From Octopus sinensis (lineage: Eukaryota): a DNA stretch of 64,000 bases. Under the pieces are notes generated by a model that was given only the letters and a program-made list of their open reading frames with translations, did not search any database and was not told the origin of the DNA. The stretch is from positions 1,860,001 through 1,924,000 of the forward strand of contig NC_043000.1 of the NCBI RefSeq assembly GCF_006345805.1. Direction: 5' to 3'. This document shows, in pieces, positions 45,201 to 51,200 of this stretch (position 1 is its first letter; each line of letters starts with the position of its first letter). Position numbers and translations under genes: made by a program.

Positions 45201-48200
45201 CCAGGGTTACTCATTTGAAGCTGAGTGGACTGGAGTAATGTGAAGTGAAGTGTTCTGATTAAGAACTGCCCAGTCTGGAGCTGAAACCAAGATCTCCTGA
45301 TTGTGAGTGTCACATGCCTTCACCAGAGACACACACACACACAAAAAACAATGATGTAAAATATATGGTAGGCAAATTAGAAAAAAAAATTAGTATAATG
45401 ACAGCATGAAAGAGAAATGAAATGGTTGGTTGGGTGAGTTATGTGATAGCTGGGCAACATATGAGGATACGGACACACTCTTACTGACATTGGAGATTTC
45501 TTCTTTGAATGGTCGGTTGGTTGGTCGGTCACACACTCACTCACTCATTCACCCACACACTCACTCACTCGCACGCTCACTCACACTCACACACACACAC
45601 TGTGCTTCCACATATTGCCAGTCAGTCAGTCACTCACTCACTCACTCGCACACACACACACACTCACTCACTCACACGCTCACTCACTCACACACACACA
45701 CACACATTCACTCACACGCTCACTCATTCACACACACACACTCACTCACTCTCACACACACACACTCACTCACACACACACACACTCACTCACTCACTCA
45801 CTCACACACACTGTGCTTCCACATATTGTCAGTCGGTCACTCACTCACTCACACTCGCACGCTCACTCTCACACACACACACACACACTGTGCTTCCACA
45901 TATTGTCAGTGGGTCACTCATTCACTCACTCACACACTCAGTCACTCGCATACACGCTCACTCACTCGCACACACGCTCACTCACTCACACACCCATTCA
46001 CTCTCACACACACACACACACAATGTGATTCCACATATTTTCTGTCTACAAAGTTCACTGACAAAGCCCTGATACACCTGGGGCTATAGTAGTAGACACT
46101 TACCCACTGGTGCCAGTATAAACAGGGTACATAAAAAGGCTGCGTAGTTAAGAAGCTTGCTTTGCAACCACACAGCCTTGCCTGCGCTTGATATTGATTG
46201 GAAATGACAAAAAAATGTATAATGGAAAAGGGTTTCTGAAGAATTTCTCCAAAACATAAGATCTTAAGGAGTGGCAATTTACTATACAGCAAATTTATCC
46301 AATACACTATTAGTTTGGACAAAACAAGTATGAGAACAACAATTCATATGGCTAAATAGAATTTGAAAGATCATCATCATCATCATTTAGCATCCGCTTT
46401 CCATGCTAGCATGGGTTGGACGGTTCATCTGGGGTCTGGGAAGCCAGAAGGCTGCAACAGGCCCAGTCTGATCTGGCAGTGTTTCTACGGCTGGATGCCC
46501 TTCCTAACGCCAACCACTCTGTGAGTGTAGTGGGTGCTTTTTACGTGCCACCCGCACAGTTGCCAGACGGAGCTGGCAAACGGCCATGGTCGGATGGTGC
46601 TTTTAACGTGCCACCCGCACGGGAGCAGTAAAAATTTTTGAAGAGAATCCAAACTTACCATAGCTGCTCCAACTGCAATTCCACAGAAACCAAGCTAAAA
46701 AGAAAACAAAAACAGTTGGAGATAGAAGTAACAATGAAATTCAGTGTAAAAGAAGGCAGTTTTATAATATTGGTTTCAAATTTTGGCACACAGCCAACAA
46801 TTTCGGGCTAAGTTGATTACAAAAACCCCAGTGCTCAACTGGTACTTATTTTATTGACCATGAAAGGATGAAAGGCAAAGTCAAACTGCAGCAGCATTTG
46901 AACTCAGAAAGTAAAATCAGAAAAAATGCAGCTAAGTAATTTGTCTAAACCAGTAATGATTCTGCCTCCTCGCCACTTAGGTATCTTTTTTTTTATGATA
47001 TTCCTTTCTACTATAGGCACAAAGCCTGCAATTGGGGGGACGGGGTAAGTCAATTACATCAACCCCAGTACTTGACCAGCACTTATTTTATCGATCCCAA
47101 AGGGGCGAGAAGCAAAGTCAACCTCAGTAGAATTTGAACTCAGAACATAAAGACAGACAAAATGCCACTAAACACTTTGTCTGGCATGCTAACGTTTCTG
47201 CCAGCTCACTGCCTTGGGCATTTTTTAAATAATATTAAACATAAGGAGTGGCTGTGTGGTAAGTAGCTTGTCTACCAACCATATGGTTCCGGGTTCAGTC
47301 CCACTGCGTGGCACCTTGGACAAGTGTCTTCTACTATAGCCTCAGGCCGACCAAGGCCTTGTGAGTGGATTTGGTGGACGGAAACTGAAAGAAGCCCGTC
47401 GTATATATGTATATATATATGCGTGTGTGTTTGTGTGTCTATGTTTGTCCCCTAGTGTTAATGTCCCCGTTACTTAGCAGTTCGGCAAAAGAGACCGATA
47501 GAATAAGTACTGGGCTTACAAAAGAATAAGTCCCAGGGTCGAGTTGCTCGATTAAAGGCGGTGCTCCAGCATGGCCGCAGTCAAATGACTGAAACAAGTA
47601 TAAGAGTATAATTTGATTAAGCAACTTTGATATTGTTGTTACAGTTGCCAGCTCAACTTGTAAAAAGATCTTTAAATGGAGGTTGTGAGTTCAACACTTA
47701 GAGATAACTACATCATATGTTCAATAGAATATTTAAGGATAAATTACCATGTCTACTTTTATATGAGTCACGTTTTATACTTGGTTCAACTGAACAAATT
47801 ATGGTGTGGCATGTACATAGGGCAAAGCTAAAACTATGAAAGGAAAAGAATGTTATACCGTAACATAACACTAAATTTTGAGGTACAACTTATACATGAG
47901 TACATACGGTCATATAATTAGCCTTATAATGAGGGCTGTTGTATAGCTAACTGACTCTGTGAGCCAAAGATTTATAACTTGAGATAGGTGGTTCCCTATT
48001 TTAAAAGGTGGCTGGACATTTTGAGCATCTACATAGAGCCAGTAAAGTGATGCAGTTAGACATAACCATGAATGGGTGAACATAATAGTTTCCAGAGAAC
48101 AGTAATAATAATTGTTGTATTTAGGAATGGTCATTTTGCCAGTTTAGCCAATAAAAACACAGGCACTATATATTTGGTGTTATTTTGCTTCAGTGTTATT

Positions 48201-51200
48201 TATTTTTTACATTAATCTTAATCTTATTTCGACCAGAGTTCTTTCGTCACACTTCTGTGACCTCATCAGTGGTCCTTTGCTTTCTTCTTTCTTATTTGTG
48301 TGTCTCTCCTTACTAACGGTCAGCCATTTTGTATTTTGTATTCCTATTGTATGTGTCTTCATTTGCGCATGCGTATACCTCTATGTGTGTCTATGTTTAG
48401 TTAGTGTGTGGGGGGGGGAGTGTCCGTAATATTTGTATCTCCTGTTTATATACGTTCGTGTAATTTGTTTTTGTTTATTGGCTTAACTGGCAAAATGACC
48501 ATTCCTAAATACAACAATATCTGTTTCAACACATGATTTCACATCAAAAATCTTGCAAAACAAATATATAAACGTAGTAATCATAATCTTATCAAAATTA
48601 TCCTTATATGCCAAACACAATAAATTGCATGATGAATCAATAACAGCCTCTACACAGTCAGTAGACTTGCAAGAAATAGCAACAAAATTTCCCTTAAATC
48701 AAACTCTACCATCTTAAAATAAAAATGGATACAGAATAATGCAGTCCAAGATGGAATTGTCATAATTGGAGAGCCTTCAATCATCTTTCAGATTTCTGTT
48801 TGCATTTCATTGGAGCAATTATTTTATAAAATTTGTTGGCCAATGCCAGCGCCGCCCCGACTGGCCCCTGTGCCGGTGGCACATAAAAAGACCATCCGAA
48901 CGTTGCCAGCACTGCCTTGGCTGGCTTCCGTGCCGCTGGCACGTTAAAAGCTCCAACCGATCATGACCAATGCCGGACCCCCCCCCCCGGCACCTGTGCA
49001 GGTGGCACGTAAAAAGCACCCACTACACTGGCGGAGTGGTTGGCGTTAGGAAGAGCATCCAGCCGTAGAAACTCTGCCAGATCAGACTGGAGCCTGGAGC
49101 AGCCCCTAACTTCCCAGACCCCAGTCGAACCGTCCAACCCGTGCTAGCGCGGGAAACGGACGTTAAACGATGATGATGATGATGATGATGATGATGTCCT
49201 TCCTATAACCATTCAAATATGAAATGAAAATGGTAACCCATAATCAGCTAAATTCACAAATGTAATTTTCATACTGCTCTAGGGTATATACCGATCTAAG
49301 GTAGGGGTCAGCAACAGGCTAACTATGTACCACAAGTGGGCTGCTAATGTGTCCTTTGTGGGCCTTAGACCATATCTAAAGAATTTTCAAATTTAGTTGT
49401 ATTTGTGAGCTATTGATAACATTTTGACAGTCAATTGTGTTTACGCTCCATACTGAATACCCATGCTTAGCAAACATAAACACTGCTAATGATGAAATTA
49501 GGAGGATGTTTCAGTCATTAGACTGTGGCCATACTGAGGCACCACCTCGAAGAATTTTCCTTTTTAGTCAAATGTATTGACCCCAGTACTTATTTTTTAA
49601 AGCCTGGTACTTATTTTATCGGTTTCTTTTGCTGAACCACTAGGTTTAGGGGATGCAAACACACCAACAACAGTTGTCAAGTGGTGGAGAAGGGGACAAA
49701 CACAGACACAAGGATATACACACACACATACATACATACATATATACACACACAACAGGCTTCTTCTAACTCTGTCTACCAAATGCACTTGCAAGAAGAC
49801 ATTTGACCAAGGTGCCATGCTGTAGGACTGAACCCAGAACCATGTGGCTAGGAAGCAAGCTTCATACCACACAGCCATATATTTTTAAATACGAGATATG
49901 ATATAATATGTGGGCCATTGACAAATATCAAAATAAAATTAAAAGTGAGCCATTACAAAAAGAAGTTACTGATCCCTTATCTGTAGGTTGCATAATTTAC
50001 ATATTGATCCACACTCTTATCTAATTTACATATTGATCCATGATCTAATTTACATGTTGCTCTACACTCCTATATAATTTACATATTACTCTAATTTACA
50101 TATTGGCCAAAGGCGTGTCATGTAACTTACATATTCCTCTACACTGTTTTATGTAATTTACATATTATTTTAAGGTGTGTTATGCAATTTTTGTACATCT
50201 CAAACAATAAATAGATGCTTAAGGGATACTTTTTGCATCTAATTAAATAATAAATTAACATGTTTAGGCACTAAAACACCAAGAGACAATAAATGCATAA
50301 AACAAACAAAAGCAATAAAAACAAAATATAAAGCCGATCTTTAAGGTAATCCTTTTATGAATCTCAAGATATCTCAAGGATTTATTTACATTTGGAGCTA
50401 AAAAGACGAGAGGCAGAGACAGATAGGATGCTTTTCTATTACAGACAACTTTCACAGAGTATGTAGCAATATAGTGTAATATATAAAATAAAATACAAAA
50501 TGGGACAAGAACGCAAGACATCCGGACAGTTAGGTGATACAAAAAGGGACAACAAAACATCCAGATAGACGATACAAAAAAAAACGCGGACGGGTCATTC
50601 GAAGCCTTTTATCTTCAGTCAAAAACCGGATCATCCTCGCAATTTCGGCTGATTAACCCCTTACCCGGCAGAAACGAATATATGCGTTTTGACCAAAATC
50701 GTTTTTTTCTATCTCTGGTGAGTTAACTCGTCAAAAGATAGACTCGCCAAAATCGACAGCAAACGATAAACAATTAAATAAAACAATTAAAAAATGTGTC
50801 TGAAAAAATACATTTATTTTCAAAATAATTGTTGGGTAAGGGGTTAATCTTGAGATTGCTCAAATCTGGCCAGCCCCAAGGAAAAACTAAGCTAAGAGCA
50901 TTAGATTCCTTGGAAAAAAGTATTGAATGTATATGAAACAAGGACGGAAAAACAGACGATGTTACAGAAATATAAATACAAAAATACAATTAAAAAACAA
51001 TAATAATAATAATAACAGGACACACAGAAATGATAACAAAATATTTGCAGCAGGAGAGGTGGAGTGAAACAAAACGAAAAAATGAAAACCATGTAAGAAT
51101 TTGCAGACCTTTCCAATGCATGTAGAGAAACTGAAAATATGAAAGAATAACAGTTTGAAAAGTGACGTGTAATTGTATTCTGCCCAATAAGACATGTAAT

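Follow-up and report, generated by a model that had tools for sequence, protein, structure and literature searches.

Does an intact-looking hammerhead ribozyme inside an intron of PDHB act on the transcript of this essential metabolic gene, or is it what a mobile element left behind? The question arises from a 64,000-nucleotide stretch of the Octopus sinensis genome (assembly GCF_006345805.1, contig NC_043000.1, positions 1,860,001 to 1,924,000 of the forward strand), hereafter called the window, whose own numbering is used below unless another sequence is named. A first-pass annotation had described a minimal hammerhead, sense to PDHB and inside its intron 4, within a ~410-bp element bounded by 45-bp terminal inverted repeats (TIRs). 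We find, with a probability of roughly 0.8, that the motif is the minimal hammerhead of a Penelope-like element (PLE), or of a derivative mobilised by PLEs, kept in a 463-bp 5'-truncated insertion, and that it probably does not cut PDHB RNA.

The motif is a minimal type I hammerhead

The 44-nt motif lies on the minus strand at 48274-48231, where we characterised it by reading the sequence, by folding and with covariance models. It reads GACCA CUGAUGA G GUCACA GAAG UGUGAC GAAA GAAC UC UGGUC, so that the first-pass reading, intact CUGAUGA/GAAA core included, holds letter for letter. Helix I is open-ended and has 5 bp (48274-48270 with 48235-48231), the core segments CUGAUGA and GAAA occupy 48269-48263 and 48245-48242, and helix II has 6 bp (48261-48256 with 48251-48246) closed by a GAAG loop at 48255-48252, its G10.1-C11.1 pair being G48261-C48246. 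An unpaired extra G at 48262 sits between A9 and G10.1; the earlier layout had set this G after the core without comment. Helix III is vestigial, comprising A48242-U48237 and potentially G48241-C48238, with U16.1 at 48237 and C17 at 48236. C16.2-U16.1-C17 makes up the triplet at the cleavage site, with the cut predicted 3' of C17, between 48236 and 48235, exactly where it had first been placed. Every conserved position of the type I core is satisfied (C3 U4 G5 A6 N7 G8 A9, G12 A13 A14, A15.1-U16.1 and H17).

Helices I and II form the minimum-free-energy fold in all the contexts that we folded (44, 76, 131, 281 and 408 nt), with pair probabilities of 0.67-1.0. The 5-bp stem I and 6-bp stem II originally proposed therefore stand, whereas the proposed 2-bp stem III closed by an AA loop does not hold as a hairpin. 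Because two pairs over a 2-nt loop cannot form one, helix III amounts in effect to a single A-U pair over a GAAC loop. Folding and cofolding of the motif gave no stable helix III, neither intramolecular nor as a palindromic dimer.

We estimated how often such a motif arises by chance with a descriptor requiring the exact core, 0-1 inserted nucleotide, a helix II of at least 6 bp, a helix I of at least 5 bp and a short helix III. At the observed stringency this gave one match per 100 Mb of first-order Markov sequence, which translates into ~6e-4 matches per 64-kb window and, with a wide margin of error, into ~10 per Gb. Octopus genomes measure a few Gb, and the motif on its own is thus significant for a window, though it would not be unique in a genome of that size.

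Beyond the core, the minimal hammerheads of PLEs are marked by an unpaired nucleotide between A9 and G10.1, a conserved G10.1-C11.1 pair, a long helix II with a short helix I, and a palindromic 15.2-16.2 pair, plus a palindromic loop 3 where there is one (Cervera & de la Pena 2014, PMC4209133). The octopus motif shows all of these traits except the palindromic loop: 15.2-16.2 is a complementary G-C, while the AA loop is not palindromic, and the helix III segment AGAACU is one substitution short of a 6-nt palindrome. Assignment to the minimal type I hammerheads of the Penelope-like kind, as first suggested, is borne out by the extra nucleotide, the G10.1-C11.1 pair, the helix lengths and the reduced helix III.

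Control hammerheads and covariation

For positive controls, a decayed copy of a PLE reverse transcriptase (RT) and GIY-YIG reading frame in the window (7.5-9.5 kb) served as the query, matching only contigs from metagenome assemblies at ~35% identity. Two of the six PLE contigs obtained in this way (L005 and L006), which encode RT plus GIY-YIG, have a hammerhead of the same build 3' of the stop codon of the open reading frame (ORF); the other four hold no recognisable minimal hammerhead. The first, L005:3346-3384, reads UUGA CUGAUGA A GAUCUA CGA UAGAUC GAAA AUU U UCAA and lies ~140 nt past the stop, and the second, L006:3854-3899, reads ...ACCA CUGAAGA A GCUGCC UUAU GGUAGU GAAA UAU A UGGU... 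and lies ~470 nt past it.

A covariance model built from the L005 motif alone retrieved a second hammerhead in the window, on the minus strand at 62502-62464 (30.6 bits, E 3e-5). This motif belongs to an insertion that we call e2 and reads CCUA UUGAAAA G GUUGCA AGA UGCAAC GAAA AUU U UAGG, with a U3-A8 core covariation, the extra G, the G10.1-C11.1 pair and a palindromic AAUU helix III. The same U3-A8 covariant has been described in Cercyon PLEs (PMC4209133). The extra nucleotide, G10.1-C11.1, long helix II and short helix I are common to L005, L006 and e2, and these three have a perfect AAUU or AUAU in helix III. When the model was seeded with L005 and e2 and the intron 4 motif left out, the latter was the top non-seed match in the 64 kb (21.9 bits, E ~0.013 with filters off), above the 18.6 bits of the independent control L006.

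The four hammerheads (intron 4, e2, L005 and L006) were aligned to the covariance model; MAFFT misaligned the two controls. All 44 of 44 pair cells are standard and 8 of the 11 pairs are changed on both sides, to be read with the caveat that the sequences were found by methods that require pairing and that only two of them belong to one family (the intron 4 insertion, e1, and e2). Between e1 and e2, compensatory changes affect two pairs in helix II and two in helix I, as well as the core (C3-G8 to U3-A8) and 15.2-16.2, and there is no disruptive change. The literature searched does not link the family to octopus.

The hammerhead sits in a 463-bp insertion with two sister copies

Three related insertions lie within the window: e1 (minus strand, 48575-48113), which carries the motif, e2 (minus strand, 62655-62370) and e3 (plus strand, 13084-13275). 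The boundaries of e1 were predicted from its homology to e2 and e3, and they are flanked by a 12-bp target-site duplication, with an upstream copy (ATTATGATTACT) at 48576-48587 that matches the downstream copy (ATTATTATTACT) at 48101-48112 in 11 of 12 positions. By flank shuffling with +/-4 nt slack the P value is ~0.001; we used shuffling in place of random window placement, a test confounded here by microsatellite arrays. A discrete mobile-element insertion around the motif, as first claimed, is therefore present and has defined ends. The inverted repeat is real as well (48111-48155 with 48474-48518, 45 nt, 98% complementary, occurring once in the window), but it is not terminal, and the mobile unit measures 463 bp as against the 408 bp between the repeat ends.

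Read along the minus strand, e1 consists of three parts. A 57-nt tail (48519-48575), outside the inverted repeat yet inside the insertion, is joined to an inverted, 5'-truncated partial copy (48474-48518) that makes up the left arm of the repeat. A forward 5'-truncated copy of 361 nt (48113-48473) follows, holding ~200 nt upstream of the ribozyme, the hammerhead and ~120 nt beyond it. This forward copy runs to the putative main reverse-transcription start (...AAATACAACA), and its 3' end resembles that of e2 (AAAATGAC...ACAACA). The tail corresponds, in reverse complement, to the stretch of parental RNA that would lie 3' of that main start. Tail and outer arm together (48595-48492) align without gaps to e2 at 62672-62569, with 70% identity over 104 nt (E 2.4e-12), and also align to e3 (E 1.2e-10). 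A 78-aa ORF inside e1 had no homologues in the gene-call search, and exact DNA patterns of the TIR core and of the hammerhead found no match in viral contigs or JGI metagenome contigs.

The e2 insertion lies ~5.7 kb upstream of the PDHB start codon and comprises tail, inverted arm, hammerhead at the apex and forward arm. Its 12-bp target-site duplication (TATGTTGAAACT) stands at 62667-62656 and 62369-62358. The insertion is present in O. vulgaris (L002:4406-4696), and O. bimaculoides has the precise empty site at L004:7661 (...GATTATGTTGAAACTGTAAGC...). The inverted repeat around its hammerhead is reported as 109 nt, of which the outer ~10 nt overlap the target-site duplication. In e3, a 56-nt tail and an inverted arm of 44 nt are joined to a forward copy. 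Where e3 aligns with e2 the two are 93-97% identical, and a 9-bp duplication (TAATAAATC) flanks e3 at 13075-13083 and 13276-13284. Its forward copy begins ~6 nt 3' of the hammerhead cut site, and e3 therefore has no hammerhead. Conservation of the core in other copies of the element, which the first-pass annotation had named as a test of its proposal, is seen in e2, where the hammerhead persists with compensatory changes; e3 does not span that region.

All three insertions have the same parts in the same order (tail, inverted partial copy, forward copy) and share both outer ends. The tail is one-sided, found on the inverted copy only, and measures 56-57 nt in all three. The inverted arms are 45 nt (e1), about 100-109 nt (e2) and 44 nt (e3) long, so the truncation point varies, and the forward copies measure 361, ~130 and ~92 nt. 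The target-site duplications of 12, 12 and 9 bp are unrelated in sequence.

The insertions have the architecture of PLE integration

PLE insertions are known for strong 5' truncation, for an adjacent inverted 5'-truncated copy that gives rise to flanking inverted repeats, and for a tail at one end only (PMC8557442). The Poseidon element PAc has both strands of its target cut and extended, and its reverse transcription begins at two adjacent internal sites with the tail between them (PMC11167929). The shared outer ends, variable truncation, one-sided tail and target-site duplications of the octopus copies are features of PLE insertions (PMC8557442) and fit the PAc mechanism (PMC11167929). In O. 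vulgaris, PLEs are a major order of transposable elements and include recently active families (PMC13282606). PLE families encode a TERT-related RT together with a GIY-YIG endonuclease.

A short conserved reading frame adds information on the parent. Its ATG lies at 48132-48134 on the minus strand, ~100 nt 3' of the cut, and is likely the start of the parental ORF. The frame of 26 codons, MT[IL]P[KR].N.ICFNT.[IF]HIKNLA.QI.K, spans the main 3' end plus the tail and is contiguous on inverted arm plus tail, at 48495-48572 (+), 62572-62649 (+) and 13089-13166 (-), translating as MTLPRQNRICFNTLIHIKNLANQIQK in e2 and MTLPRHNRICFNTRNYIKNFANQIQK in e3. Differences between e1 and e2 within it fall 5/3/13 on codon positions 1/2/3 (P = 0.007). 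Such a third-position excess is a coding signature, so that the probable start of the parental ORF falls about 70-100 nt 3' of the hammerhead cut. A similar layout is seen in L006, where an RT and endonuclease (EN) ORF is followed by the hammerhead, ~110 nt and the next ORF start.

From these features we infer the following course of events. The parental hammerhead would have stood about 70-100 nt upstream of the ORF start, and reverse transcription would have begun at two nearby internal sites, ~24 nt and ~80 nt into the ORF, with cDNA primed from both ends of the cut target. The first cDNA, from the distal start, would carry the 57-nt tail and stop after ~100 nt, becoming the inverted arm; the second, from the proximal start, would run 361 nt through an uncleaved hammerhead. 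Joining of the two would create the apparent 45-nt terminal inverted repeat, and staggered cleavage of the target the 12-bp duplication. The ribozyme's original role was presumably self-processing of multimeric element RNA as a dimer.

Several observations weigh against the PLE reading of a hammerhead that is inactive in place. No Rfam hammerhead model matched the motif at its gathering score, so the covariance model search that the first-pass annotation had proposed did not report it; in E-value mode the best match was the RAGATH-1 hammerhead, with 11.3 bits against the 56.3 required. This failure is uninformative for the minimal class, since the bona fide PLE hammerheads of L005 and L006 fail the Rfam models as well. 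The e1 target-site duplication carries one mismatch, and e1 itself has no empty site, O. bimaculoides lacking a whole 2.7-kb block there. At 56-57 nt, the tail is longer than the customary figure of 30-40 nt. In e2 and e3 the conserved frame runs into a stop (codon 27) that lies 5 nt from the end of the tail, and in e1 it has an internal stop. A tblastn search with the 26-residue peptide matched nothing beyond e1, e2, e3 and the O. vulgaris orthologues of these, none of them in a longer ORF, and no full-length parent with an RT/GIY-YIG ORF starting MT[IL]P... was found among the sequences searched; the link to PLEs therefore draws on architecture and ribozyme type. Finally, the predicted site may be weakly cleaved with the assistance of host factors.

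The decayed PLE copy used as the query above lies on the plus strand at ~7500-9450. Frameshifts and stops interrupt its ORF, in which RT motifs, a 'KPT..YLH..S.HP' block, a Cys-rich linker and a GIY-YIG domain can be made out, and its database relatives carry PF00078, PF26215 and PF01541. No hammerhead was detected beside it, and this RT/GIY-YIG copy is unrelated to the e1 family.

The parent might have been a protein-less, non-autonomous element mobilised by PLEs, with e1 a solo copy of a family resembling non-LTR (long terminal repeat) retrozymes rather than a remnant of an autonomous PLE. The copies are short in all three cases (192-463 bp), with no RT ORF attached, and the stop at codon 27 in e2 and e3 would suit such a parent. 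Animal retrozymes have, moreover, been proposed to be partners of PLEs, derived from their pseudo-LTRs (pLTRs) and including solo monomers (bioRxiv 10.64898/2026.07.22.740005), and monomers of 170-400 nt are typical (PMC7229834). We nevertheless consider this origin unlikely. There is no tandem array at 48.1-48.6, 62.3-62.7 or 13.0-13.3 kb and at most one hammerhead per site, the third-position excess argues for a coding region 3' of the hammerhead in the lineage that separates e1 and e2, and strong 5' truncation is normal for autonomous PLEs (PMC8557442). Non-LTR retrozymes are recognised by tandem hammerhead repeats of 170-400 bp, and we did not assign the family to them, as none of the three sites has such repeats.

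cDNA ends near the predicted cut

The inverted copy of e2 terminates inside helix I, no more than 4 nt away from the predicted cut, and the forward copy of e3 starts ~6 nt 3' of it. These two 5' ends, in the regions 62464-62502 (e2 inverted arm) and 13184-13190 (e3 forward arm), thus fall within ~6 nt of the predicted cleavage site, and the three copies give a hint of cDNA ends gathering where the hammerhead would cut. The ends in the e2/e3 subfamily are possibly, although only tentatively so, footprints of hammerhead cleavage in vivo during PLE retrotransposition, left by run-off reverse transcription on a cleaved template; in that case e1 would stem from read-through of a template that was not cleaved. 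The ends fit equally well with an enzyme that pauses at the base of the stable ribozyme fold, and two cases make for a lead only. For Poseidon PAc, in vitro work found the hammerhead cleavage step dispensable and RNA-seq did not detect it (PMC11167929). If the run-off explanation were true, and 5' ends piled up at the cut genome-wide, they would supply in vivo evidence for a cleavage step during retrotransposition.

The inverted repeat is not that of a TIR transposon

A miniature inverted-repeat transposable element (MITE) with 45-bp TIRs, carrying or having captured a hammerhead, would account for a 98% complementary repeat whose arms lie ~400 bp apart around DNA with no coding capacity, and the repeat annotation of O. 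vulgaris includes many MITE and unclassified TIR families (PMC13282606). The sister copies make this very unlikely. Homology to e2 and e3 extends 57 nt past the left arm, and the repeat is therefore not terminal. The sister copies share their outer ends, yet have arms of ~105 and 44 nt and differ in internal content, where cut-and-paste copies would be uniform. The target-site duplications vary between 9 and 12 bp, while a fixed length is expected for a transposon superfamily, and the position of the hammerhead is asymmetric, its distance being constant to just one of the two ends.

We rejected the identification as a TIR-bounded DNA transposon on the 57-nt unrepeated extension inside the target-site duplication, the variable arms and the nested 5' truncations. 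The TIR-bounded element of the first-pass annotation is better described as an inverted repeat produced by PLE-style integration inside a 12-bp target-site duplication. With target-site duplications and an empty site at hand, the family offers a worked example of how PLE integration can imitate a TIR element or a MITE. This mimicry matters for the annotation of cephalopod repeats, which include many families reported as 'unclassified TIR' or 'MITE'.

The hammerhead and PDHB

The window matches O. sinensis chromosome CM016862.1 with 100% identity. PDHB lies on the minus strand of the window, with a transcription unit from 56768 to 33113. Exact peptide mapping of XP_029635416.1 placed coding exon 4 at 51273-51214 and coding exon 5 at 46694-46659, both on the minus strand and bordering the host intron upstream and downstream, respectively. 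The insertion lies between them, and its description as sense inside PDHB intron 4 is therefore right.

The e1 insertion is present at the orthologous site of O. vulgaris (L002:19918-20338), where the hammerhead is identical (0/44 changes, compared with 13/364 in the rest of the element). At the element's own rate, 0/44 changes are expected 20% of the time (P = 0.20), so the motif shows no excess conservation over neighbouring element DNA. It is absent from O. bimaculoides and from Argonauta, whose intron measures only ~570 bp, lacks the element and is uninformative on the e1 boundaries. On the genomes compared, then, the motif is lineage-specific, being shared by O. sinensis and O. vulgaris alone, and nothing in it suggests constraint. 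The 2.7-kb block of intron 4 missing from O. bimaculoides spans 50420-47732 (junction L004:16218) and holds, besides e1, two high-copy SINE (short interspersed nuclear element)-like repeats at 49878-49507 and 49190-48837 and ~1.9 kb of apparently unique DNA; the difference may stem from a deletion or from serial insertions.

A hammerhead that is active in place, cleaving nascent PDHB pre-mRNA alone or as a dimer in trans and modulating expression, would be favoured by the intact core, the stability of helices I and II in every context tried, the sense orientation within the transcription unit and the identity in O. vulgaris. There is also the example of amniote intronic hammerheads, for which roles in mRNA biogenesis have been proposed, as cited in PMC7229834. 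Published single minimal hammerheads, however, show no detectable cleavage, and the activity of their dimers and trimers is weak and seen mostly at Mg2+ levels that are not physiological (PMC4209133). This class depends on a dimer, which is disfavoured here because AGAACU lacks self-complementarity: pairing would leave two A.A mismatches, and cofolding gave no helix III dimer. Moreover, the hammerhead is the only one in the PDHB transcription unit, that of e2 lying 5.7 kb upstream of the start codon, so that no second copy is available in the transcript; conservation is at the neutral expectation and the insertion lineage-specific. Only fast ribozymes are known to outrun co-transcriptional splicing. 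Cleavage in place that modulates PDHB is therefore highly improbable, and so is any relevant effect of the hammerhead on the gene; the suggestion that it could cut the nascent transcript, made in the first-pass annotation, fails on the single copy, the non-palindromic AGAACU, the inactivity of published monomers, the neutral conservation and the lineage-specific distribution.

The PLE origin leaves in intron 4 a solitary, helix-III-defective monomer that would be evolving neutrally, most likely with no relevant cleavage of PDHB pre-mRNA. An intact-looking ribozyme in an essential metabolic gene is in this case the expected debris of retrotransposition, and its presence does not show that a ribozyme controls PDHB.

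The motif could also resemble the hammerhead consensus by coincidence, without descent from any ribozyme. The limited information in the descriptor (~10 matches per Gb, or tens in a genome of a few Gb) and the silence of the Rfam models might speak for this, but it is extremely improbable given the expectation of only ~6e-4 per window, the PLE-specific extras beyond the core (PMC4209133), the hammerhead at the equivalent place in a homologous window element with compensatory substitutions, and the PLE architecture of the insertion.

Other repeats in the window

The window is otherwise rich in repeats. A 32-bp minisatellite of ~77 copies with 92% identity occupies 17730-20185 and produces artefactual ORFs of up to 817 aa in several frames; downstream of it, at 20959-22504, lies a 1.5-kb array rich in (TGTA)n and (TA)n. 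Another repeat, SINE-like and present in high copy number, has tandem units of 62-67 bp inside it and recurs at 5549-5713, 31017-31166, 38051-38201 and 59706-59968. SINE-like copies nearby (5475, 38274, 39249 and 41289) contain CUGAUGAAGCC-UUCU-GGCUUC, which mimics the first half of the hammerhead core plus helix II without the GAAA and is therefore a trap for motif scans.

Two further fragments were judged by eye from their translations: one of the N-terminus of a Tc1/mariner-type transposase (helix-turn-helix region) at 12600-12992 on the minus strand, and one resembling the C-terminal region of a non-LTR retrotransposon ORF2 at 63085-63477 on the plus strand. A 139-nt inverted repeat (61126-61264 with 63719-63857, 86% complementary) brackets ~2.5 kb that include e2 and the non-LTR fragment, and (TTA)n arrays at 61244-61340 and 61485-61542 add another hairpin to what is a nested repeat cluster.

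Comparison with known systems

The octopus motif shares its sense-strand intronic position and type I topology with the amniote hammerheads HH9 and HH10 (de la Pena & Garcia-Robles 2010, as cited in PMC7229834). As far as they are described there, those are deeply conserved, stable as monomers and matched by Rfam, whereas the octopus motif is lineage-specific, has no stable helix III and has no Rfam match. With MITEs of the Stowaway or Tourist type, the e1 family has in common a size of ~400 bp, the lack of coding sequence, an intronic location and a long inverted repeat near the ends; it differs in that the repeat is non-terminal on one side, the arm length is variable, the target-site duplications measure 9-12 bp and the 5' truncations are nested.

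Metazoan non-LTR retrozymes (PMC7229834; bioRxiv 10.64898/2026.07.22.740005) are likewise short, AT-rich, non-coding units, a few hundred nt long, that carry a type I hammerhead. Their proposed origin is the pLTR of PLEs, whose enzymes would mobilise them, and they too can occur as solo monomers. Retrozymes are nonetheless built as tandem repeats, each with a hammerhead that is usually canonical and makes loop-loop contacts, while the octopus copies are single, dispersed, minimal and partly inverted.

The minimal hammerheads of PLEs (PMC4209133) are closer. They agree with the octopus motif in type I topology, in the CUGANGA/GAAA core, in a helix I of 4-5 bp and a helix II of 6-8 bp, in a helix III reduced to 1-2 pairs, and in occurring mostly as solitary motifs in truncated copies. 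They differ in loop 3, which in octopus is AA and makes AGAACU non-palindromic, weakening the dimer.

For the insertion as a whole, the best comparison is with Poseidon PAc of Anolis carolinensis (PMC11167929), in which the hammerhead also adjoins the start of the ORF, and reverse transcription starts, as it probably did for the octopus copies, at two adjacent internal sites with a one-sided tail. PAc and other PLE insertions (PMC8557442) further share with the octopus copies strong 5' truncation and an inverted partial copy, and probably the processing of both target strands. The octopus tail is longer (56-57 nt as against 30-40 nt in PLEs and PAc), the starts lie ~24 and ~80 nt into the putative ORF in place of 111-118 nt, and the hammerhead stands about 70-100 nt upstream of the ATG, whereas that of PAc overlaps it. 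What emerges in a mollusc is a regular architecture consistent with two start sites, with a 56-57-nt tail always on the inverted copy, which matches a mechanism that has been shown biochemically only for the PLE of a lizard.

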